A stretch of 59,334 nucleotides of DNA, counting the filler, from Basidiobolus meristosporus CBS 931.73 (lineage: Eukaryota > Fungi > Basidiobolomycota), in NCBI GenBank assembly GCA_002104905.1. It is 3 parts of 3 records of this genome, joined end to end, with 100 filler letters (N's around TTAATTAATTAA, not from the genome) between each part and the next. Parts side by side here need not be neighbours in the genome. Positions count along the whole stretch, not along the records: positions 1 to 25,045 come from MCFE01000936.1; 2 more parts are not named here. The stretch is one strand, 5' to 3'. The notes below the pieces were generated by a model. It did not search any database. It worked only from the letters and a program-made list of their open reading frames with translations, and was not told where the DNA came from. Each line of letters starts with the position of its first letter. Position 1 is the first letter of the stretch. A program made the position numbers and the translations under genes. Of the stretch, positions 1 to 22,923 are shown piece after piece.

Positions 1-1929
1 CTACCACCATATCTCTCTTTAGAAAGCCAAAAGGTAAGCTTGCTCTACTTGATATGCAAGCTGTACCTATACTGACCCCCCCTCCCATACAGCCGTCAAA
101 AAAGATCCCCGTTCGTGTCGTTGTGAACTGTGCCAGAGAAAAGTGGCGAACTTGACTGTCAAGAAGAACACCAGTGTCGTCAGTAAAAGGTATGCTAAAC
201 CCGGACTCTTCTAAACTTCCCACCACTCAACCATATGTTATTTAGACTTGTGTTCGTTCTTCTCGGCTGGGTGTTGTTTGGCTTTCTAGCGTACAAAGCT
301 TCCACCACCAAAATTGAAACCAACATCTGGGATCCTTATGAAATCCTTGGTATTGACCCCGGAGCAACCACGAAGCAGGTCAAAAAGCACTACAAGAGAC
401 TCAGCTTGAAGTGGCATCCTGACAAGGTTAGCTCTGAGATGGCGGAGGAAGCTGAGAGCAAGTTTGTAGAGATCACCAAGGCTTATAAGGTGCTTACCGA
501 TGACGAGATAAGAAAGAATTACGAAGAGTTCGGCCATCCTGATGGTCGTCAATCCATGTCGCTTGGCATTGCTCTTCCCTCATGGCTGGTAGAGTCAGGC
601 AACTCCTTCTTCGTCCTAGCGATTTACGGAGGATTATTCGGGGTCCTACTTCCCCTTTATGTCGGACGCTGGTGGTACAAATCTCTTCGCTATACCAAGG
701 ACAGGATTCTTAATCAAACCATGGCCACGTACTTCAAACAACTAACCGACGACATCTCCCTCAGAGGAATGGTCGACCTTCTGTCAACGAGCGCCGAGTT
801 CAAGGAGGAGGTGCTATTAAAGCCAACGGACGCAGTTGAAGTACCCAAGCTTATCAGATCCATCGAGCAAACGCTTCAGGATCGCGGTGAGGTCTACTTG
901 AAATCCAAGAAATACAGTGCACCTTACTGCGTCAAGGCCCATGCTCTAATTACCGCGTATATAAACCGGGTCCCTGTTCAAGATGCCGGCCTTGCGGAGG
1001 ATCAGCAAGAGATTATCAAGAAGTCCATCCATCTGGTTTTGGGTATGCTTCAGATCTCTACCGCACACAGCTGGCTAGAGACTAGCTTACGCTGCATGGA
1101 GCTGTCTCAGATGTTAGTCCAAGCGCTTCACATCACCAAGCCACCGATCCTTCAGCTCCCATATATCGATGAAGAGACAGCACGAGCGTTCGCCAGAAAG
1201 AAGGTTCGCTCCGTCAAGCATTTTGTGGAATTCCCCAACGATGAAAGGAAGCTTGTACTTCGAGACATTTCGAATGAGAAGTATGAAAATCTTATGAATG
1301 TTGCCATGGATTACCCGTCGGTTCAGGTGCCTAAAGCATACTTCAAGGTCATCGGAGACGACGCTATCACCCCTGGTGCAATTGTTACCTGTGTTGTCAA
1401 GTTGAACTTGACCTCAGCTCGCTACAGAGCCGAACACCCCCAGAAGCCAAGCGATGAGAACGAAGGGGACGTATCCGACGACGAGGTGGATCGCTTCTTC
1501 GCCAAAAAAGATGCCGATAATCTAGCACCAACTCGGATCCATTCCCCTTACTTCCCATTAGACAAAAGACCTTTCTGGTGGGTTGTGATCTGTGATCCTA
1601 GAGGCAATCGTATCATTCTTCCACCCACCAAGGTTAGTAGCCTTGTCTTTGACAAGACTGAAACTGTCAAGTTCCAGTTCCAAGCACCACAGCGTCCCGG
1701 TCACTATCCTTTCACGGTATTCGTGAAGAGTGACTCTCAAGTAGGCACCGATATAAGACGGGATATCCAGCTTCACGTTCAGGATTCTTCGGTTCTTCCC
1801 CCTGAGGAGGAGATTGAGGATGATATTTCCGAGCCTGAGGAGGACTCCATTGCTGGTCAAATGGCACAACTTCGTGCTCAGCAACAAGGTCGAGGAAATA
1901 ACGGGGAGGACACCTCTGATGAAGAATAA
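1..1929 (+). CDS. SEC63: ER translocon J-domain protein Sec63, 5'-partial (exons 1-33, 93-189, 246-1929)
   Basis: TM segment followed by a J domain (WDPYEILG...HPDK...YKVLTD), then the Sec63/Brl domain and an acidic C-terminus. GT-AG introns 34-92 and 190-245 join an upstream CxCxxC exon in frame, so the ORF-track ATG at 235 lies inside an intron. Confidence 0.95.
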
Positions 1930-3557: not shown

Positions 3558-5658
3558 TCACCCGAAGTACGAGGTGCGGCTTGGATCGTTGAAGGTGAGA
3601 GTGGTGTTTTGGCTGGGTGAAAAGGCAAAGTAATCCGCCCCAGATGGGGTCGAGGTGGGTGGCGATAACAGAGACAAACTGAGCTGTCTCCTTGAGCTGG
3701 ATTGGCTGGCGAGAACACCTTCCTTGGAAGTGGAAGGATCAAGTCGTTCGCACCCTGGCGCACCCATCAATCTCCATAACACAGCTTCGTAGCAGAAGAC
3801 AAACTGATGCAAAGTTTGCACCATTGAAAGGCGCTGGTCTCGGAACTGATCCACCGTTTCCGCAATCACGTCGTTTGCGGTGTCCACAGACTTCGCAGCC
3901 AGCGACTCGAGCACCGTGTCAATGGTGCAGAAAGCGCCCGTTCTTCCACATCCAGCGCTGCAGTGGACAACCATGGGCCCAGCTCTACTGGAATGCTGAA
4001 GGTCATGGGCAATGTCGCGCAAAGCCAGTACGCTTGTCGGGTCGGCGGGAATACCGAAGTCTGGCCATCCTATGAATTGGAGCTGATGGATTTTACGCTC
4101 CTCTCCCGTCGAGAGGTTGATTAGCACGAAATCACGTAAGAGGACGGTGCGGTCCGCTTCCAGTGGAAATTGCTCCGAAATCAGCTTCACCTGCATGCTT
4201 TCGCCGTACATCACACTAGATGAAGAGGGGTCTGGCCAATAACGATGACACTTGATACGACCGGCTTCCTCCTCCTTGGTGAGCATCACGATAACGCGAG
4301 AGTTCTGCTCCCAGATCATTTCCCAGAAGTCAGCAAAGGTCGAGGGCATTGGGCCCTGGGTAGCAATGTATTGCTTCTCGGAGTTTTTTCCGCATATGAA
4401 GCTAGCGTTGATGTAATCGGAGTCGGATACAACTGGGTGCTTGAGCCTCACTCTCGAATGCTCGTATGGCCAGATATTGTTGTAGCGATTCTTGGAGCCA
4501 CGTTCGACGCCGGCCGCAATGCTGTAAGGGTTAGCTTTACACACATGATGTGCCTGGGCTATGAGCAAGGACTGGAGTCGCTTCTGCTCTACCTTGTCGA
4601 GTCGCTGGAATAATACGTCAATACTTCACTGATATGGGATGGGATGGAGTCTAAGTTTGGAAGGGTACCTTGAATGTCTGCGACAGCTTGTATTTACCCT
4701 GCGGGTTGTAGGAGACATCGGAAAGGAAGTATGGAATTTCGATATTCAACTTGGATGCAGCATTTGGCGTGCGAACGGCTATGATTTCGCCAAGCTCGCA
4801 AGTGACCTCATGATGGGGCCGGATATTACTGAGGAATGGGTTGATCATGTTATCCATTGGAGTTGGGCAGACCAGAGGCGCTGCCAAGAAGCTCGAAGGG
4901 GATGGCAAAGGCTTGGGAACTAGCGTTTGAGTAGGCTGATCCCGATTGACCTCGCACATATTAGGAAATCTCGCTGTGAACGCACCAAACCCGCCTTTCA
5001 ACCAACCAACGGCCGCTGCCGAGGGTTTGCCAGTGAACTTTCTGGTAAAATATGCTATTGGTGACGTATCGACCACCGCCTCGGAAGATGCATCGCACAC
5101 CACAATGTTGGAGTACTTCTTCCAGTTCTGGAGCGCCTCCCGATCCTTCTCGGTCACTAGAGATTCGGCAATCTTTTCTAGGCCGAAGGACGCGCGCTTC
5201 AGCAGGGTGTTGGGGACACAGACATGAACCGAATTGCGGATGTGAGAGTGGGAATATTGAGCAGGGGATCTCATATCTATCACTAGTACTAGATTGTTTG
5301 TGGTTTGTCCCAGAAGATCAGCTAATGATTCAGGGGTTACCGCCCTAAGGCTGGCTGGTTCCAAGCCAGAATTTGCCGACGCCGAGGCTGCTTTCTCAGC
5401 TGACTTGGCCTTGGACGGCTGCATGCTAGGGAAATTAAACCGCGTAATGGATTCGGGCGCATGCGGTTGCTGGCTCCCGCCTGAGGGGAAGTAGCTTTTC
5501 ACTCCGGAGCCACATGGCGAGGAAGCCAAGGGTGAAATGATTGGCGCATCCAAGGGATTTGTTGAGTGTGACTTATTGGGAGATTTGGCGCTACGCGTAA
5601 AGAACGAGGAGTCCGGGAGTGCGATGTGGTTTGGTTTGTACGAAAAGCCTATGGTCAT
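3558..5658 (-). CDS. Classical protein-tyrosine phosphatase with N-terminal rhodanese/Cdc25-like domain (Ptp2/Ptp3/Pyp-like MAPK phosphatase), about 678 aa; exons 5658-4669 and 4604-3558
   Basis: KNRY, WPD loop (GWPDFG), VHCSAGCGRTG and Q loop (QTLHQF). Rhodanese-like IDMRS...HIRNSVH...WLKGGF. A 64-nt GT-AG intron (4605-4668) joins the two ORFs in frame. Confidence 0.92.
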
Positions 5659-6939
5659 AATCACAGCTTTACTTGATCAATAGGTTGAGTGGCTAATATT
5701 AACAGAGCAAGTACGAGCAAGTACGTACAGCGGTACTTCTCAAAGGAGGTGTTGGAGGAAGTAGGCTATGGATGTCGACGGGAGGGGTGGCAGCGCACTT
5801 TATAATGAGAATCAATCAAGGTCGAGGAGGCAGTGGAACGACGTACGACAAGTGCGATTAATGGAACAAATACGAGGAAAGATATAATATAGGTGACAAC
5901 TGGAGTTGGGGAGCAGCCATCGGGTTATTTATTCGAAACTCAGAGTGAGCGGCGAAGAAGATACGGTCCATAAATGGAGGGATGGATCATTAGAAAATCC
6001 CAAATCTTTCCTGAGGGATTTGTAGTCTCCCAACAAATGATCTAATGTCACCGGATCGAGGCACACCATTGGTGGGTGGGATTTATATATTCAATTAATT
6101 AGATGTGTAGTGTGTCCAAAAGCCATCATTTGAAACAGCTCCTTTTGATTGAATACCACTGTGGGTATTGCACAGTTATAGTATAATAAAATAATCTAGA
6201 GTCTCAGATTAGGATTCACGGCAATCAAGCTTCATCCACCCCAAAAGTTCTATTCTAGGCGGCATATAATGCACGCATTATTGCTCCACTGGACATATTC
6301 CAAGCAAATAACCACTCTTGCGACTTCCGCGTAATGACTGGGTCGCGAGCAACCATCCAGCGCACCTCGCATCGGTGAGACCGGCGGTGGAAAAGCAAGG
6401 GGCTTCATTTCAGCATGCAGAGGGAAGCATGATTATTTATGGTTTGTTGGGTCGATTGCTTTGGCGGATGAGGCGATGGCTATGAATGCGATAAATTGAA
6501 TGCTTTGGCTTCAGGCTGAATGGCCGTTGTCATTATAGACATCGTGTCGAACAATATGCATATTAGCTAATCATCGTGATGACAGGAGACAACAATCAAT
6601 GGTGAGCGGCCAAAAACACCAGGCGGACTGGATTAGGTAATTCCGACGTCACCCACCGTTTTTGGAATCGTTTTTTGAAGCATCCAGTTCGGGGTTTTAT
6701 GGTATCTGGCTGATCAGTATAATCCGAATATTCTAAGGGGCGATACAGCACCCAGCACCACCTCAGTTTCCTCGATTATCATTCACGGGTTGAGGACGGA
6801 TACAATTCAATCACTCAAAGTAAACGCACTCTTGGGCGGGAGCCGGTTGCTTCTTCAACACCCATAAGGTCAGTGTTTGAGATCTCCCCGGCTCTTGACG
6901 TCATAGGAGATGTTAAATCAGGGCTGTCTTGTCCACAGA

Positions 6940-9678: not shown

Positions 9679-11050
9679 CTATTGCATTGGTCGCAGGATT
9701 ATTTTTCCAGAAAAGCAATCGTTGATCGGCTCATCATCAACAATCTCCTGTCGGACCAAACCCTCAGGCTCAAATACCAATCTGGTCTCGTGGTCTGCTT
9801 CGAAAGACACCCAATCAGGGCTAGGAACCCCGTTGCTAGCGAAGCCCATCTGGTAGCTGGAAATCGTTCGGGCCACCTTTTGCTCAGATTCGTTTAGGTG
9901 TTGGACCTGGTTGAATACAAAATAAATCTCGTTGGCGTGGTGAACACCAAGGGAGAACCGGGCGTTCTTTTCCATGGGTGAGTTGAACAGGTAGAAATAT
10001 ATTCTTCGTGACGGTTGAAGGAGATCCTCATTGCGAGATAATGCTCGAGCAGTTTCACGAGCTGGGCCAGAAAAATGTTGGCCAGCGATAATACTGGATA
10101 AAGCACACTTGGTAGACCCATCAAGCGCATCAATAGGATAAACCTCCTGTAATGTGGCGGCAATCTAGGAAGAAAAGAGCCTTTATTATATGTTGCCATA
10201 GTCTTCGAGTTCTCGCGCAGGATAATCGCGTAGAAAAAGGGACCCCTCATCCATAGTTTCACCGATTATGATCTCCTTTACGCATGGGTTAATGCTTTTT
10301 TGGACGCTCATAGAGATCCTTCAGGCTTTGCTCGATGGTAAAACCATCAATGGTTCCTGTCCATGAACTGCTTTTCTTTAGCATGTCGACTAGAGTCTGC
10401 CTGAGCTTTTCCCCAGGGATCTCTCGCAGTTGCGCCACCTTGTCGCTCCCTTTAATATCCAGACTTCGACAGAGTTCATCGAACATCCGTTGCTGCCTCT
10501 CTACAGGTTTGGGTGCTATTGTATCGAAGCCTCCGGACTGTTAAGTTGCCAACAGGCGGCTTGGAATAGCTACAAGTTAATACCGATTCACACACATTGT
10601 GAACATCAGGAGAAAAGAACCGAACTGACCATAGGGAATGTTCAAGAAAGAACGATGGGCTACGGAGGAGCTGTCTTTGTACGTCCCCTGCTGGAGTTGA
10701 GCTGTTGAGTCGTTCTGAATCGTCATGGTGGATGGTTGAGTTCTGAGTTTGCATTGTTGGGTGATGGTCTTTTTATACCGTATGAAGCTCAAGAATTCGG
10801 TGCACCTGAGTGGGACATACGACTCACCGGACTTTACCAATAGTACTCATTGCTAGCTGGCCCATTCAAACATTAGTCACACGAGGCGGAGATTGCTACA
10901 ACGCTCGGGATTACCTTCTTGGCCGCACGGGTAGCAGATGGAAAGATCCTGGCACCAATGCTTTCGACCATTGATCGCTGACGGTATCAGGAATCTATTT
11001 CAAGCCATAATTCTCCGGATTCCTCCTGTGGAACTGCATAAACCGGATAT
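9679..11050 (-). pseudogene. Type-B carboxylesterase/lipase pseudogene
   Basis: IIIGETMDEG (catalytic acid motif), GVHHANEIYFVF (catalytic His motif), and remnants ENYGLK and GNPER. In-frame stops at 10183-10188 (TAA TAA) and 10165-10167 (TAG), plus a frameshift near 10290. The upstream boundary is approximate. Confidence 0.75.
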
Positions 11051-16327: not shown

Positions 16328-17625
16328 CTATTAAGTAAAAGATTAATACTTCATACTCTAAGTAGTCCAAATATCATCTGAGTGGCATTGAGCTCAGTTC
16401 AGACAAAATGTTAGATTGTTTTTTGGGCCATTGAAGCCTTGAAAGATGTTCAAGCTCTTGGAGAAGCCCAAAGGCTTAATACTTGCAATATCTCCTCCTA
16501 GGCTGGTGGCTTGGCGAATCATCTTCATTACTCACCAGAATCTTGCTAATAGCATCATCTTGTTCAAATAAATCTCATGGCTTTTAGAGTTCCTGTTGCT
16601 TATACTACTTTGTCAATATCAGAATGCATATATGCTAATCCTGTTGAGGTTGAGTTGCTAATAATAGCAGTAAGGTAGTAATATATTTGCACAAATAGAT
16701 ACTCATTGAACTATTAGTATCAAAATTTACCCTTTGAGAGCTGTGTATTTTTGCACCTAAATGGTACCAATGGTAGAAGTAACTAAAGCTGAAGCACATG
16801 TAGTGGTACACATGTTGCTATATCTTCCTACAGATGGAAGATCCCCTGACTTTATATCAGGACTCAGAGTATTGGGCACTTTACACAAGTAATCCGCAAT
16901 AATTCACAGGTCCAATTTCAACTCAACTGGATGAGCTTATTACACTAGAAACTCCACAATTCTGATGATGAATAAATATAACTCATTAGAGCCAACTGCA
17001 AAGCCAAGAGTACCAGGTGATAGACTGAGCGGTATACTGGCGTGACAAAAATTATCACAATCACCTATAAAGCAAAATCCATCTGTCCATTAATAGTACA
17101 TATATTGTGTAGGAGTTTCCGAGATACAATCTTGAATTTCATGCCCATATTACACCATTAGCCCGTGCATAGTTTCAGAGCCAATGGGATACACTGTGGG
17201 TGCTGATATTCAATCACCATAATTATGCAGTTTATCCGGGACAGTATTGGTAGAAACAAGAATCAAGCCTTCCATCACAACTGGTTTGGTGCAAAGTTGA
17301 GGTATCACACGCAACAGCCCAAGAACTCTCTTCATCCATCCCAAAATGGAACTCTCTCACCCCTATATCACTGATATACTCCGTAGATCTCCCATCCAAG
17401 AGATTGGCAGGTTAGTCAAGAGTGAAGGCTTATTCTGGGTACCGTATATCGTGGGCAGGTGGGTGAGAACCAGGCCATGACCAGAAATGCCTTGATGAGT
17501 CATATCCTTCATCCGCCTATTCGGAGCGTCGTAAATCCCCAGCTTTATGGATGCCACCTGGGTCGAAACCAATTAGGCTGAATTGGGGTGTGTATTGAAT
17601 AGAATGTGCACAGTTGGTTTTAGAT

Positions 17626-17730
17626 ATCCCAATCCCAATCCCAATCCCAATCCCAATCCCAATCCCAATCCCAATCCCAATCCCAATCCCAATCCCAATC
17701 CCAATCCCAATCCCAATCCCAATCCCAATC
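17626..17730. repeat. Perfect hexanucleotide microsatellite (ATCCCA)17.5, i.e. (GGGATT)n on the minus strand
   Basis: Read directly from the sequence. Confidence 0.98.
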
Positions 17731-17956
17731 TGTAGCTCAATGCTATCAAGAAATGCTGGGTTCTTCGAATTACTCGATAAATCAGTTGGTATCGTAGTCA
17801 TCCTTCTACGAGCAAGGAATACGTTGAGAGGATACTGGCTTCAAGGTGATTTGCACTTTACTAACGTTGCAACAAGGATATCATCAAGTTATATATACTG
17901 ATGGGTATTCATAGAAATTAGGTGTATAAAGAGTTGGGGTTGGTGTTGAGTCAGGG

Positions 17957-20900
17957 CTAGCTTGAATTGGATTCGCTCTTGGATGACCGGGACTCCCCAT
18001 GACGGCGCAAATCCCGTAACTTAGGGTTGTTGACCAGAGTGTATGCCAAATGCCATCTGTTGCGGGCAACCAATCTGCGGCTCTCAAGTCTAGCCGTCAT
18101 GATGGTGATGGATTTCATTTCCTCGACCACATCCTCTTTGTCGCCCACAAGGGCGAATGGTGATCTGATCAGCTTACGCCAGCTGTTGGACTCAATCTTT
18201 AAGGGAGCCTCATGGTGAGACTTGCCCAGCATCAAACAGAGGAACACCATGTTGATTGGATTGTAGTAGTAATGTTCAGAGAGAAGCTAGGAATAAGATC
18301 TGCGTTATCATCCGCACTAACAGGAGCCATTGGGCAAGAAGAATACATACCAATCCCAGGTAGGCGTTGTAGCCGCTATCACTAGATCTGAGGTTGACAT
18401 GTAACACGTTACGATCCACTCTTGAACTGAACATGAAGATCGTGAAGAACGCCTTGATCATTCGTCCAACCCAGCCAGTGATACCGCTGGGAATATGCAC
18501 GAATATGGCCAGGAAAGACCAGTGCATGAATCCATTGCGGCGTCTGAGCCAGAATTTTGTCCCAGGAATGATGAAGATGAGTGTGGTGATCAGCCCGACC
18601 AACTTACTGATGACCCACGAGATAAAGATGGGGAGGAGGAAGGAGAGCAGTAGCCAGCGAACAATGAAGTTTCGAACCGGAATGATCAGAACGATAGCTG
18701 AGATCAGGATCAGGATCAAGAAGAGCTGAATGATCACCACAAGGGAGGCAAAAAAGGCATTTCCGATCGCTGCGCCGTAAAACTTCAGGAAGTCGTTCAT
18801 GCTGATATCGTTGCCCTTCCGATGATGAAACAAAGAATAGTTTCCCAGGCGAAGTTGCACCAGATCGCGTTGGAAGCGATACTTGACTCCAGATGTGAAG
18901 AGGATAATCCCTGGTGCGCAAATCTGTTAGTCACATTCTCGGAAACTACGGCATCAATCTCCATACCAAATCCGCCCACCAAAACACTAAGGAAAGTGGA
19001 GGCTTTCATGGCCAAAAGAACCTTCCCTGCGGTATCCATATCTTCCCCTAATACTCCACCCATCTCGTTGCCAAAAGCAACAGCCTCTGTGACAACACAG
19101 GCCACTGAACTTTGAACAAAATAGTACAGCCGAACCACGAGATATATCATTACTTGCATGATGATGAGTGTGATAGTGGCGAGGGTAAAGTGGATCATAT
19201 CGGGAATTCTGGAAAAAGAACGGCTGAGTCGTTTTGGGATTAGATGCCTGCAAGCTGTCATTACTTACTCGACATAACGGACGATGTCGCGCTTGTATCT
19301 ACGATAACTAAGGACCTCTCCGGGATGACGGATCGTAGCGAAAAATCCAGGTGGGGATTTGTCATCCTGGAACTCCATTTTCCTAGCAACTAGCATACTT
19401 TTGACATACTGAAAGTCAGAAGAATAGGCAAGTACCGCCTCTTGAGATCTGGAAGCTCTTGCGGAGAACATGCAGGCCAGGAAATAGATGATCAAAATGA
19501 AAGTAAACAGCACAACCGGAACGTTGGACATAATCGTTGTGATTCTTCCAAAGCCCAATTCCCGGTAATAGGCTTCCACAATATTACCAATGTACTGGAG
19601 AAACAACGCAGCGGACACGATGACACCCAGGATGCTTCCAAGTAGTTTGTGCGACTGCTCGTAGCACAGGAAGAGTGGATAGAGAAGTAACCCGTTCCAG
19701 AGCAGCAAGAGGATCAAGAAGAGACCTTTGGTGTACTTCGCAACTGTGGGGTCCATGTTTAACATTATCTGAAAGCGATTTTGACCACTCGCAATCTCCA
19801 TTGCGGATACAAAAACCAACTGTGCTACGATCCCGAAAAGGACGATGGATATGCGATTATCTTTTCGACGTTTCAGCAAGTTGATTGGGCTGGGAATACA
19901 CCCGAGTTAGTCGAATCGTACACGGCAAAGCATCATTGTTCTCTCAACTTACATGGGAAAGGGAATATTGTTGCGTCCGAAAATGAGGATTAGAAAGGGA
20001 ACAACTATGATGGCTCCCATTGATACACACATGGCAGCGACCGAAACTGCAGAGCATGATTAGCGGAGTTGGGTGACTTCATTAGATGTAGTTACAGCTT
20101 ACTGTTCTCGAAGTGCTTCACTATATAGGCATCATAGTAGGCTTGTTCAAGGTATAGCACGAATCCATTAAAGCACTTCACGCCATGGCTTGATGCTTGT
20201 AGGATGAGATCAATGGAGCGGGTGTTCGGAGGCACCTCGAAGGGTTGATAAGACTCGATGGGCCACGAATCACGATTCAACCCTTGTACTTGATCAATAA
20301 CGGCGTTGTTAGCATCGTAGAAGGCCAGGGTTAGGTTCGTGTCCTTAAAGCTATATGCAGTGCTAATGGCAATGATCGATTCAGAAGAGTAGCGGATTTT
20401 AGCCACCTATTAGTGTAATTAGTATCGAGAGAATCTCAACGATCGCCACAGGATGCACCTACCATGAGCCCTTTATCTATCTTTGAGATGAACGGAGCTA
20501 TTTTTTCTTTACCGACTGTTTGTTTCAGCTCGATCAAGCTCTCCTGTGCAGGCGGATTTGGCCGAATTGCTGTTGCAGAGCAGCAGACTATTCAGGGCGA
20601 AGATCCTATTTAGCGTACTCGTGGGGCGAATATGAGTTATGAGCACAACACTTACGGCCATTCAACATTATCCATTCATCATTTTTGAACACCCACGGTG
20701 TATTCGGAGCGTCTAAATCGCAACGATCAGAGGGAAGCATGTTCTTTATCCTTGACATCAATACAGTTAATACTATACTCGCAACTGACGATCTACGGGT
20801 GCTTACCCCTCAGAGTTCACTTGGCATTGCATTAAGAAAAGGTCTACAGGGAATTCAAGGCTACTTAATGGACAGTTCAAAAACGGGTCTTTTTCATAAG

Positions 20901-20995
20901 CAATGCGTACCTGCTTCAACCAACGGTGCTAAAACAACACAGAATACAATCGAAAGCCAGAGCAGCAACGACATCTTTTCAGTCATATTTCTCAT
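17957..20995 (-). CDS. STRA6/RBP-receptor-like polytopic membrane protein with signal peptide and an extra N-terminal ectodomain, about 830 aa; exons 20995-20911, 20843-20807, 20750-20656, 20587-20463, 20406-20103, 20046-19953, 19889-19269, 19208-18967, 18910-18351, 18286-17957
   Basis: Nine GT-AG introns (56-68 nt) with consistent phases give one open frame of 2493 nt. STRA6-like motifs: PIPINLL...RISIVLFG, QLRLGN, SRVDRNVL...DSGYNAYLGL..EHYYYNP, ARNRWHLAYTLVNNPKL. Many hydrophobic helices. Confidence 0.85.
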
Positions 20996-22419
20996 CTACA
21001 GTAGGGCCAAGTAGCCTGTGTTCTCTGCAGGTAGGCAAACCGTCTGAAAACTGTCAACAACATCAACGCTCCCGGTGTTTTATATCCCCAGCTTCTGATA
21101 AATCTGGCTGAAAGTTGTATTTGCATCATGATGTTAATCCAGTATCGATTCATATATGGTAGTAATGCAAGTGTTGTTTCCTAAACCAAATGTCTTTAGA
21201 GTTTGAGTAGCGTAGAAATACTGGACTACTGCTATGAGTAGCCTGCTTAAAACCCGGCTCTGCACAAGATACTTGCAGAATACAGTTACTCAACCCATCA
21301 GTATCGCCGCATCTTCCAAATAATGCCCCATGTTAGCGCTTCAATGTTACCTTAACCTTAATTTCTGCTCAGTGTGATTGGTAATCTCAGCTTAATGGGC
21401 TTCAGCCTAACACCAGGTCGCACAATCCTTGTAGTAGAAATAATATTTGCTTAATTGTTTCCCACATAATAACTCACGGATTCTGGGATGTATGAATCTA
21501 GCGCTTCCGGCACAGCAATTTGTCCCCAACACCTAATTTTGGAAATTGGGCCTTGTGGTGAAGCCAGACTTTGCCAGGATATAGGCTTCATCATTGGTTT
21601 GTTGGGATCCGTGTTTGTAGCAAATATAGTAGTAATTCTAACCCCCCCATGATCCACCACCTTACCAAGGTCTTGATTATTGATCCCCTCAGACAGATCC
21701 TGCAGAACCTTCTTTGATCACAACAGTTTGACCAAACCAACCGTGGAGATGTAAGCAATATAGAATGTGTCTGTCTATGATAAGCCCATCCAACAATTTT
21801 GTCTGCGCGGTCATGGTGACAAATCAGCTGATGTTCAAACCCTCAGAGATGCAGCAATAAAAGTCAGTTCAGTACGTTTCAAGTTTCTTGAGTCACACGA
21901 GTGCTTTATCCTCTTTCATGACCAAGGCGGGTCATGATGAGTGACAACTATCAGGATGACTTCTCGTACCAGTAGGTGTATTAGATGCGTCGATGTTGCG
22001 GGTATACATCCAAATTAGGAGAATGACGCTCTTGTGCAAGAGCAATTACTGATATGTAGCCAACTGACTCGCAGTTACCGATTATTTACCACCCAATTTT
22101 CATTTGCATCCAGATGGTCAGGCGAAGGCACATGTGCTAAACACACGTAACTTCTTACGGTGAATAAAGCGGATGTGTCCGCTAATTAATTCGTTCTTTG
22201 CTGCCGCAAGGGACAATCTAAGTAGTATCGCCAGATTCTTTTTCACCTAGTAATTATATGAGAATATGTTGGATGTCGCCTCAGAGAGAAAAAGAAAATA
22301 TATTGTCTGTAAATTGTCGCCACGGTACATAAACGAGACTAAGCTACTGCTGCTAAGGGACCTCTAGTGTATTGAAATCATTACGAAGTCAAATGGTTGC
22401 TTGCGCTAGGCACGAGCCT

Positions 22420-22923
22420 CAGCCTTTAATGGGGCTTCGTTATGAGACTATCCCAACATCTAGCAGGAGGGCACCATATTGTTTGGGTTGCAGTTGAAAT
22501 ATTCAGAGAAGCCGGAAATAGAATCTGTGCTATCGTCCGCACTAACTGGAATCTTTGAACTCAAAGAATACGTACCAATCCCAGGTAGGCATTGGAACCG
22601 CTTGGCATTAGATCTGGGTTTGGCATGTAGCACGTTGTGATCCGCTCAGGAGCCATGCCAGGAGGATGTGAAGATAATCTGGTGCATATGTCCAACACAA
22701 CCAATAAAACTACTGACGATACTTCATAATCTCAAGAAGAAAGAGAAGTATACGGGTTCCGTTCGGTGTTTGAGCCATATTTCTGCCCCAGGAGTGATGA
22801 GGAGCATGGTTGTGATAACCAGGGCCACCTTACTGACAACCCACGAAGTGAGGAGGAGGTGGAAAGTGAGGAGAGTAGTAAACGGCAATTATTGAGGCTT
22901 CGTACCCGTAAAATTCTAACCAA
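22420..22923 (-). pseudogene. Degenerate tandem duplicate of exons 9-10 of the STRA6-like gene
   Basis: Translates as WVVSKVALVITTMLLITPGAEIWLK...DHNVLH...NAYLGL followed by an intron at the same position, then EYFNCNPNNMV. Colinear with 18190-18690. Contains stops and a frameshift. Confidence 0.75.

Follow-up and report, generated by a model that had tools for sequence, protein, structure and literature searches.

Described STRA6 systems

STRA6, the receptor by which animals take up retinol (vitamin A), has been treated as specific to animals, or even as a vertebrate invention tied to RBP4 (PMC5977736, PMC3184775). The structural features against which any new relative can be set come from two sources (PMC5954442 and PMC8595884): in zebrafish STRA6, a conserved inter-subunit salt bridge, R511'-D539, joins the intramembrane helix to the juxtamembrane loop (PMC5954442); in human STRA6, Y643 and T644 lie in the tail (PMC8595884). 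Amphioxus homologues group with Stra6l, not with Stra6 (PMC3184775).

In fungi, what was already known is a set of automatic database labels on relatives, as a preliminary description of the present locus had supposed: a precomputed PF14752 match on the deposited protein, and the name of a Paraphysoderma protein. That description knew of no functional account in fungi, and none was found in the literature searched; nor did the search for fungal STRA6 or RBP_receptor relatives turn up a paper describing one. Described here is a STRA6-like fungal gene, with its ectodomain and its transcripts. The gene, from Basidiobolus meristosporus CBS 931.73 (scaffold MCFE01000936.1), occupies positions 17957-20995, minus strand, of the 59,334-nucleotide stretch of DNA analysed here, referred to as the window.

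Gene structure and transcripts

The spliced frame comprises 10 exons and 2493 nt, is open throughout and encodes 830 aa; a stop codon stands in frame immediately 5' of the ATG at 20995. Exon count, protein length and coordinates are exactly those first proposed. The orthologue in B. ranarum is K7432_011062 (P0001), 60% identical over the largest exon. The features are as follows.

17957..20995, minus strand: complete coding sequence of the STRA6-like gene, stop codon included (spliced model, colinear with B. ranarum orthologue P0001)
20995-20911, 20843-20807, 20750-20656, 20587-20463, 20406-20103, minus strand: exons 1-5
20046-19953, 19889-19269, 19208-18967, 18910-18351, 18286-17957, minus strand: exons 6-10
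20996..21034, minus strand: 5' UTR, minimum extent (an X3 transcript contig extends to 21034)
18287-18350, 18911-18966, 19209-19268, 19890-19952, minus strand: introns with X3 support, first four
20407-20462, 20588-20655, 20751-20806, 20844-20910, minus strand: introns with X3 support, other four

The nine introns, 56-68 nt in length, all have GT-AG ends. Transcript contigs from X3, a public run labelled 'DNA?' whose contigs proved spliced, skip eight of the nine with base precision; the gaps have CT..AC ends when read on the plus strand. The genomic runs X1 and X2 are continuous over 18040-21200, with the introns present. X3 contig cover is absent across intron 5 (20047-20102) and below about 18043, at the end of the coding sequence. 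Transcripts thus bear out the junctions of the preliminary description at eight introns, intron 5 being the one that no X3 contig crosses. Intron 5 is supported in another way, because the deposited model, the B. ranarum orthologue and three paralogous loci all have the identical junction. The gene of B. meristosporus is intact, it is transcribed, and its transcripts are correctly spliced.

Membership of the family

Judged by profile homology, the 830-aa protein is a member of the STRA6 / RBP_receptor family. Three separate exon pieces of the window match Pfam RBP_receptor colinearly (E 1e-10, 0.0056 and 1.9e-7; 41.4, 15.9 and 30.7 bits), the curated cut-off of this profile (PF14752, length 605) being 25 bits; such a series of matches is not due to chance. 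Whole proteins score far above that cut-off: the deposited model (P0007) reaches 92.3 bits, the B. ranarum orthologue 106.8 and the Paraphysoderma protein (P0004) 145.7. The match of the orthologue spans profile positions 43-605 of 605, starting at its residue ~269. A profile built from fungal proteins and run against the PDB has a sole match, zebrafish STRA6 (5sy1_A; E 1.5e-24, chain residues 50-636).

The fold evidence comes from predicted models of a protein about 58% identical, the B. ranarum orthologue, not of the window's protein. The full-length AF2 model, made from a seven-sequence alignment, is too poor (pLDDT 47, pTM 0.36) to show a cleft, its lateral opening or the position of the ectodomain; Foldseek with it gave 5sy1_A as the only significant PDB match (E 5e-6), at an identity to zebrafish STRA6 of only about 16%. 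For orthologue residues 243-858, the Atlas model matches a STRA6-like cluster with TM 0.68/0.71 over 490 residues, the next best reaching 0.24; feature similarity is 0.95, with 224/256 features in common. The original identification of a STRA6 homologue in a fungus is borne out by the Pfam match, by the PDB profile match to 5SY1 only and by the fold match of the orthologue.

The Atlas clusters nearest to the fungal cores bear the names 'stimulated by retinoic acid gene 6 protein-like' and 'receptor for retinol uptake stra6-like'. Taken with the amphioxus grouping, these names fit the view that a STRA6L-type protein is the older form.

Membrane core and cytosolic tail

With vertebrate STRA6 (5SY1) the fungal protein has in common the Pfam family, homology in core and tail, nine-TM hydropathy, the R/D pair and the calmodulin-binding helix. 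The STRA6-type motif blocks of the preliminary description are present, every one, and in the order given there.

18170..20103, minus strand: predicted membrane core, RBP_receptor/STRA6 type, residues 216-760 (Pfam, 5sy1_A profile match, hydropathy, Atlas fold of the orthologue)
Residues 246-265: motif PIPINLL..R..FG
Around residues 553-559: motif LRLG, inside QLRLGNY
18245..18488, minus strand: most conserved block, intramembrane helix plus juxtamembrane loop, residues 676-735 (intron 9 inside)
Residues 698-731: motif RVD...DSGYNAYLG..E...NP
18462-18464, minus strand: R684
18378-18380, minus strand: D712
17999..18067, minus strand: C-terminal amphipathic helix ARNRWHLAYTLVNNPKLRDLRRH, putative calmodulin-binding helix motif, residues 795-817 (phmmer)
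Residues 795-809: motif ARNRWHLAYTLVNNP

By hydropathy, the 830-aa model has nine peaks of TM length downstream of the signal peptide, TM1 beginning near residue 220, and the core also includes an intramembrane-helix region; this fits a predicted core of nine TM helices with an additional intramembrane helix. In the alignment of the fungal profile with 5sy1_A, zebrafish R511 and D539 are the counterparts of R684 and D712, and both positions are invariant in all four full-length fungal proteins. Conservation of this inter-subunit pair is suggestive of a fungal homodimer.

A phmmer search with the last exon finds 5sy1_A, at residues 604-639 with E 0.0022, and the peptide 5k8q_B, a chain of 29 residues, with E 0.028. 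5K8Q is a calmodulin complex, and the zebrafish structure 5SY1 was solved with calmodulin bound. On this homology, the cytosolic tail carries the STRA6 calmodulin-binding helix. Within the helix a Y-T-L-V-N-N-P stretch is strongly conserved between the fungal protein and STRA6; presumably Y643 and T644 of human STRA6 belong in it, a cross-species mapping that we infer. Since the stretch is kept in fungi, where we know of no JAK/STAT pathway, its conservation cannot stem from JAK/STAT signalling. In vertebrate STRA6 the RBP4-binding region lies between TM6 and TM7; in the fungal protein this region shows scant conservation, and the TM6-TM7 loop (about residues 494-517) is variable even among fungal paralogues, with few identities to zebrafish STRA6.

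The N-terminal ectodomain

The strict STRA6 trait of a short N-terminus leading straight into TM1 is not found here. In contrast to vertebrate STRA6, the fungal protein adds a cleavable-looking signal peptide and a predicted beta-sandwich ectodomain of ~190 aa before TM1. Neither element has a counterpart in the PF14752 model, whose basis is mainly animal proteins, and STRA6L/RBPR2 (vertebrates, invertebrate deuterostomes), unlike the fungal proteins, is without the ectodomain.

20912..20995, minus strand: putative signal peptide, residues 1-28, exon 1 (hydrophobic peak at residues 8-26)
20104..20911, minus strand: N-terminal ectodomain, residues 29-215, from the last base of exon 1 to exon 5, introns 1-4 included

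Equivalent N-termini are present in P0001, P0008 and P0004. The ectodomain has five Cys (35, 51, 74, 75, 192) and one N-glycosylation sequon, and is homologous to that of Paraphysoderma (BLASTP 2e-10). The AF2 model of the orthologous ectodomain is a beta-sandwich (pLDDT 68.9, pTM 0.67), with which Foldseek retrieves CBM/lectin-like modules (E 2e-4 to 5e-3): the predicted fold resembles CBM22, CBM61, CBM16, the Fbs1/FBA sugar-binding domain and the Nictaba/PP2 lectins, whereas the sequence matches nothing in Pfam or the PDB. Against AFDB clusters the matches are at E 1.5e-6 and weaker, with Atlas TM 0.59-0.66; language-model features give DUF642/CBM_4_9/FBA. The fold matches are moderate overall (TM about 0.4-0.66, E 1e-6 to 5e-3); they bear on the predicted lectin/CBM-like beta-sandwich fold and not on sugar binding. 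No sugar-binding residues were identifiable in the ectodomain model; a ligand other than carbohydrate is therefore equally possible.

What the protein may do

One way to understand the protein, and by analogy with STRA6 the probable one, is as a calmodulin-bound channel in which a hydrophobic ligand moves between a donor outside the cell and the membrane. It would form a homodimer, partly held by the R684-D712 pair, with calmodulin on the tail; a hydrophobic cleft would face outward, with a lateral opening into the bilayer; a small molecule of low solubility would pass between extracellular donor and membrane with no energy input, Ca2+/calmodulin biasing the direction of flow. The built-in lectin/CBM-like ectodomain would replace the docking role of the vertebrate RBP4-binding loops: as we know of no RBP4 in fungi, docking is most likely by the ectodomain, whose target might be a carrier, a particle or a surface that bears glycans. 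The added domain, if the predicted fold is right, suggests another way of engaging an extracellular donor. As to cargo, our rough apportionment gives one third to a retinoid or apocarotenoid and two thirds to a sterol or other lipid. The wider proposal of the preliminary description, that the system transports or detects a hydrophobic ligand, is a reasonable one. Ancestral cargo and docking mode are questions that could be answered in a culturable fungus.

A second perspective supposes that the STRA6-type fold is here mainly a sensor or signalling receptor: the ectodomain would detect a glycan or surface cue and pass the signal on via bound calmodulin. The likeness of the ectodomain to sugar-binding modules speaks for it, as does the calmodulin-binding helix, the most strongly conserved cytosolic element; signalling by vertebrate STRA6 has also been reported (PMC8595884). 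However, conservation overall is highest in the intramembrane helix and loop region, which frames the putative retinol site in STRA6, and this suggests that handling of a membrane ligand is the conserved function; moreover, the JAK/STAT partners of vertebrate STRA6 signalling are not known from fungi. We think a primary role in sensing possible, though unlikely.

A further scenario specifies the cargo. The STRA6 fold would be an ancient means by which opisthokonts pass hydrophobic molecules into membranes; fitted in fungi with a docking domain that replaces a soluble carrier protein, it would allow early-diverging fungi, Basidiobolus and the alga parasite Paraphysoderma among them, to import retinal, retinol or carotenoid-derived compounds from their hosts or food, chromophore supply for light sensing being one possible use. 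We consider it distinctly improbable in this specific form; were it true, the retinoid handling of the family would be older than animals and RBP4.

Fungal relatives and origin

Other fungal proteins with the RBP_receptor domain are KAI9136378.1 of Paraphysoderma sedebokerense, K7432_002594 of B. ranarum and the B. meristosporus paralogues. The homologue in Paraphysoderma (Blastocladiomycota) is named 'retinol binding protein receptor-domain-containing protein'. All the fungal relatives have the signal peptide, the Cys-containing ectodomain, the STRA6-like core and the calmodulin-binding helix. The genes differ in structure: those of Basidiobolus consist of ten exons, that of Paraphysoderma has no introns. 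When the orthologue, a seven-sequence profile or the Paraphysoderma core was used as query in word-index protein searches, the matches listed were all from Basidiobolus and Paraphysoderma; the 8000 candidates that such a search compares were probably taken up by unrelated membrane proteins. An exhaustive phmmer search with a 204-aa exon returned six proteins at E <= 0.001, a figure that is not the range of the family, as this exon is the one least conserved with animals. A metagenome scan with a four-sequence alignment gave 141 pattern matches, of which none was confirmed as a relative.

Another idea is that Basidiobolus recently acquired the gene from an animal host and uses it as a receptor for host RBP4, scavenging retinol. 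Basidiobolus lives with vertebrate hosts, as a gut associate of amphibians and reptiles. The family has moreover been called animal-specific (PMC5977736). Against this, the identity to zebrafish STRA6 is only about 16% (Foldseek); the extra ectodomain is common to Paraphysoderma, a blastocladiomycete parasitic on algae; the nine short introns are of fungal type and conserved at four paralogous loci; the GC content of the coding sequence (0.467) resembles that of the remaining window (0.438); and the RBP4-binding loop region is poorly conserved. We regard such a host-fed receptor as very improbable, and a recent transfer from an animal host as probably not the source of the gene. Introns, GC content, low identity and a blastocladiomycete homologue of the same architecture together argue, at the level of sequence, for a native gene and for vertical descent.

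The STRA6 family is then probably old in opisthokonts and kept in a few early-diverging fungal lineages. As the B. meristosporus gene is real, expressed and a STRA6 relative, the STRA6 membrane fold is not confined to animals. Fold and calmodulin partnership both probably predate animals as well as RBP4, since this gene is intact, expressed and multi-copy, with the R/D pair and the calmodulin-binding helix kept, and stands in fungi from which no RBP4 is known.

Deposited models, paralogues and neighbours

The public B. meristosporus gene models of the STRA6-like family are wrong, being truncated or carrying false introns, and need correction. The deposited model of the present gene, K493DRAFT_363692, has 715 aa against 830 aa: it is N-truncated, and three exon stretches retained in transcripts have been removed. 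It is 58% identical to the B. ranarum orthologue in alignment. The notion that the locus is a decaying, non-functional copy or an artefact of gene prediction, which the faulty deposited model and a decayed partial copy nearby might encourage, is largely refuted and next to impossible: 830 codons are open after splicing, the gene yields transcripts that are spliced where predicted, and it is colinear with orthologue and paralogues, with the family-invariant residues kept.

SDR, ALDH and CRAL-TRIO genes near paralogue loci were considered as a retinoid gene cluster. This was rejected, because such genes are very abundant and the neighbours vary between loci; no SDR, ALDH or CRAL-TRIO neighbour was found in the window itself or at the Paraphysoderma locus.

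The STRA6-like gene is multi-copy in B. meristosporus, with short introns conserved across four paralogous loci. The paralogues have diverged too far for synonymous rates between them to be dependable. A decayed partial copy, a pseudogene fragment, lies 1.4 kb upstream of it; this fragment, the paralogues and the N-terminal beta-sandwich ectodomain are additions to the preliminary description.

Gene structure and expression

The STRA6-like gene, on scaffold MCFE01000936.1 (25,045 bp) of Basidiobolus meristosporus CBS 931.73, gives a single open frame of 830 codons when ten exons are spliced along the minus strand from 20995 to 17957; a stop codon lies in frame immediately 5' of the ATG, and all nine introns are GT-AG, of 56-68 nt each.

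Exons of the STRA6-like gene (window positions)
20995-20911, 20843-20807, 20750-20656, 20587-20463, 20406-20103, minus strand: exons 1-5
20046-19953, 19889-19269, 19208-18967, 18910-18351, 18286-17957, minus strand: exons 6-10

The preliminary description had reported the gene in this ten-exon form, and both the observation and the model are confirmed: the 37-nt exon 2 is backed by the Basidiobolus ranarum orthologue (K7432_011062), which reads DLFLMQCQ there, and the four motif blocks quoted at that stage all occur in the 830-aa model, in the order stated.

Contigs of run X3 omit eight of the nine predicted introns to the base (CT..AC ends on the plus strand), and the genomic runs X1 and X2 are unbroken across the introns; X3 is therefore cDNA-derived. 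X3 cover is lacking at intron 5 and over the final ~86 nt of the CDS; upstream, one contig reaches 21034, so that the 5' UTR extends at least this far. Intron 5 finds support in the deposited model, the orthologue and three paralogous loci, all of which have this junction. At position 19832, 39 letters from a contig end, one X3 contig has G and the genome C, perhaps through allelic variation, a read from a paralogue or a sequence error.

The deposited model (K493DRAFT_363692, 715 aa) starts 44 residues late and lacks residues 274-298, 399-421 and 473-495 of the 830-aa model. As X3 contigs run unbroken over the three stretches concerned (19571-19889, 19269-19453 and 18966-19208), these three ‘introns’ are false.

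Membership of the STRA6 family

That the protein belongs to the STRA6/RBP_receptor family is well supported, by Pfam, PDB-profile, Foldseek, Atlas and hydropathy results. Three exon pieces match Pfam RBP_receptor (PF14752) colinearly; against a cut-off of 25 bits, the deposited model scores 92.3, the B. ranarum orthologue 106.8 (profile 43-605 of 605), another fungal member (P0008) 105.9 and the Paraphysoderma sedebokerense homologue (KAI9136378.1) 145.7. A profile of the fungal proteins has a single match among PDB sequences, zebrafish STRA6 (5sy1_A; E 1.5e-24, chain residues 50-636). The AF2 model of the full-length orthologue is poor (pLDDT 47; seven-sequence input), and 5sy1_A is its sole significant PDB match in Foldseek (E 5e-6). 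The Atlas model of orthologue residues 243-858 superposes on a STRA6-like cluster with TM 0.68/0.71 over 490 residues (next best 0.24); the feature similarity of this core is 0.95 (224 of 256 features in common). The Paraphysoderma core has the same feature similarity, the structural values listed with it being those of the hit's own model. In the 830-aa model, hydropathy shows nine peaks of TM length in addition to a signal peptide. The homology to STRA6 first proposed from sequence thus stands, on the PF14752, 5sy1_A profile and Atlas fold matches.

The strongest conserved block, residues 676-735, comprises the intramembrane helix and juxtamembrane loop. Within it R684 and D712, invariant in all four full-length fungal proteins, align with zebrafish R511 and D539 (fungal profile against 5sy1_A). 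According to PMC5954442, these two residues form a conserved salt bridge between subunits; the bridge stabilises the putative retinol site, and Matthew-Wood syndrome mutations affect it. The TM6-TM7 loop, to which RBP binding maps in vertebrates, is variable.

In the last exon there is a match to residues 604-639 of 5sy1_A, and one to the 29-residue peptide of 5K8Q, a crystal structure of that peptide with calmodulin. Fungal and zebrafish tails have in common the stretch W-x-L-x-Y-T-L-V-N-N-P ... R-[KR]-H. Fungi are not known to have JAK/STAT, so calmodulin binding is the better explanation for the conservation of this C-terminal helix. By a constant numbering offset, the stretch appears to cover the equivalents of Y643, T644 and R655 of human STRA6, discussed in PMC8595884.

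The N-terminal ectodomain

What is new here is an architectural variant; the family itself is already known. A signal peptide and ~190 residues precede TM1, with cysteines at five conserved positions (35, 51, 74, 75 and 192). This fungus-specific ectodomain, left uncovered by the PF14752 profile, is common to B. meristosporus, B. ranarum and Paraphysoderma (BLASTP E 2e-10 between the window and Paraphysoderma sequences); searches of Pfam families and of PDB sequences gave no match to it. AF2 predicts a beta-sandwich for the orthologous ectodomain (pLDDT 68.9, pTM 0.67, core blocks 80-93), and the structures that the model retrieves in fold searches are sandwiches of carbohydrate-binding or lectin type: phage tailspike accessory domains, CBM22/61/16, the Fbs1 sugar-binding domain and Nictaba/PP2 lectins (E 2e-4 to 5e-3), with accessory domains of secreted bacterial enzymes as further matches. 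Assignment to this fold class, made on a predicted structure, is reasonably supported. Residues 36-244 of AlphaFold DB A0A433PJK5 (908 aa; ‘Retinol binding protein receptor-domain-containing protein’ in UniProt) match the model structurally (E 1.2e-4); at least one more deposited protein thus combines ectodomain and receptor.

Paralogues, homologues and probable origin

With the largest exon as query, an exhaustive phmmer run picked out three representatives from Basidiobolus and one from Paraphysoderma sedebokerense (Blastocladiomycota), besides two fragments, one metagenomic and the other from a sea urchin. Beyond the window gene, at least three full-length loci of B. meristosporus have its exon structure, the first two listed being near-identical:

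L002, 4616-7650, MCFE01000003.1: paralogue
L003, 4136-7170, MCFE01001316.1: paralogue
L004, 4382-7417, MCFE01000736.1: paralogue

Their deposited models are N-truncated (485 aa, ‘partial’, and 411 aa) and lack the ectodomain exons, part of which is annotated as a separate 119-aa gene. In B. ranarum there are two copies or more. The Paraphysoderma gene (L007 7290-9788, JAHLJZ010000129.1; 832 codons) is intronless, against ten exons in Basidiobolus.

STRA6 has been termed animal-specific (PMC5977736); amphioxus has Stra6l-type genes only (PMC3184775), and a stra6 homologue is expressed in sponges (PMC7743902). The preliminary description expected automatic labels without functional description, and so it proved: databases already label the protein, and the literature searched, on the STRA6 family with fungi or holozoans and on Basidiobolus with retinoids, yielded no published study or description of a fungal member.

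The gene can be argued to be an old fungal, probably opisthokont, one and not a recent capture from a vertebrate host, since identity to zebrafish STRA6 is ~16% (Foldseek), its introns are of fungal type, its GC is similar to that of the surrounding DNA, and the ectodomain occurs in two deep fungal lineages.

A decayed partial copy of the 3' part lies ~1.4 kb upstream of the ATG (22382-22846, minus strand). It aligns to residues 632-768 (36% identity, E 1.4e-19) with five in-frame stops and a gap at the place of intron 9; its appearance is that of a pseudogene left by a partial tandem duplication.

Possible function

The analysis shows that the gene is expressed, that its product belongs to the family and has a predicted STRA6-type fold, and that the R/D pair and calmodulin helix are kept. 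Most likely the protein would act as a dimer with calmodulin bound, in which an outward-facing hydrophobic cleft would let a hydrophobic ligand pass into or out of the bilayer passively; the ectodomain would take the place of RBP4 docking. A role as a sensor is the chief alternative, and we consider it rather unlikely. Recent transfer with RBP4-receptor function kept is highly improbable; a dead gene, with spliced transcripts in hand, is essentially excluded.

Genomic neighbours

Other genes on the scaffold, none with an obvious connection in function to the STRA6-like one, are:

235-1929, plus strand: Sec63/DnaJ protein
3558-5664, minus strand: tyrosine phosphatase ORF and an adjacent rhodanese-domain ORF, both likely to be exons of a single gene
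about 9679-10726: carboxylesterase-family model (deposited annotation)

Short-chain dehydrogenases, aldehyde dehydrogenases and CRAL-TRIO proteins are families used in animal retinoid handling, and all three are abundant. No neighbour of this kind was seen on the scaffold of the STRA6-like gene or at the Paraphysoderma locus. Near other copies they do occur, as a lead only: a short-chain dehydrogenase 0.7 kb from two paralogues (L002 8384-8884; L003 7903-8402), an aldehyde dehydrogenase 3.6 kb from a third (L004 11006-12469), and, in B. ranarum, a CRAL-TRIO protein 2 kb from K7432_002594 (L006 7171-8028).

A long (CCCAAT)n microsatellite (17583-17735, plus strand) starts ~220 nt downstream of the stop codon; this hexamer accounts for the PNPNPN, GIGIGI and GLGLGL pseudo-ORFs in the ORF list.
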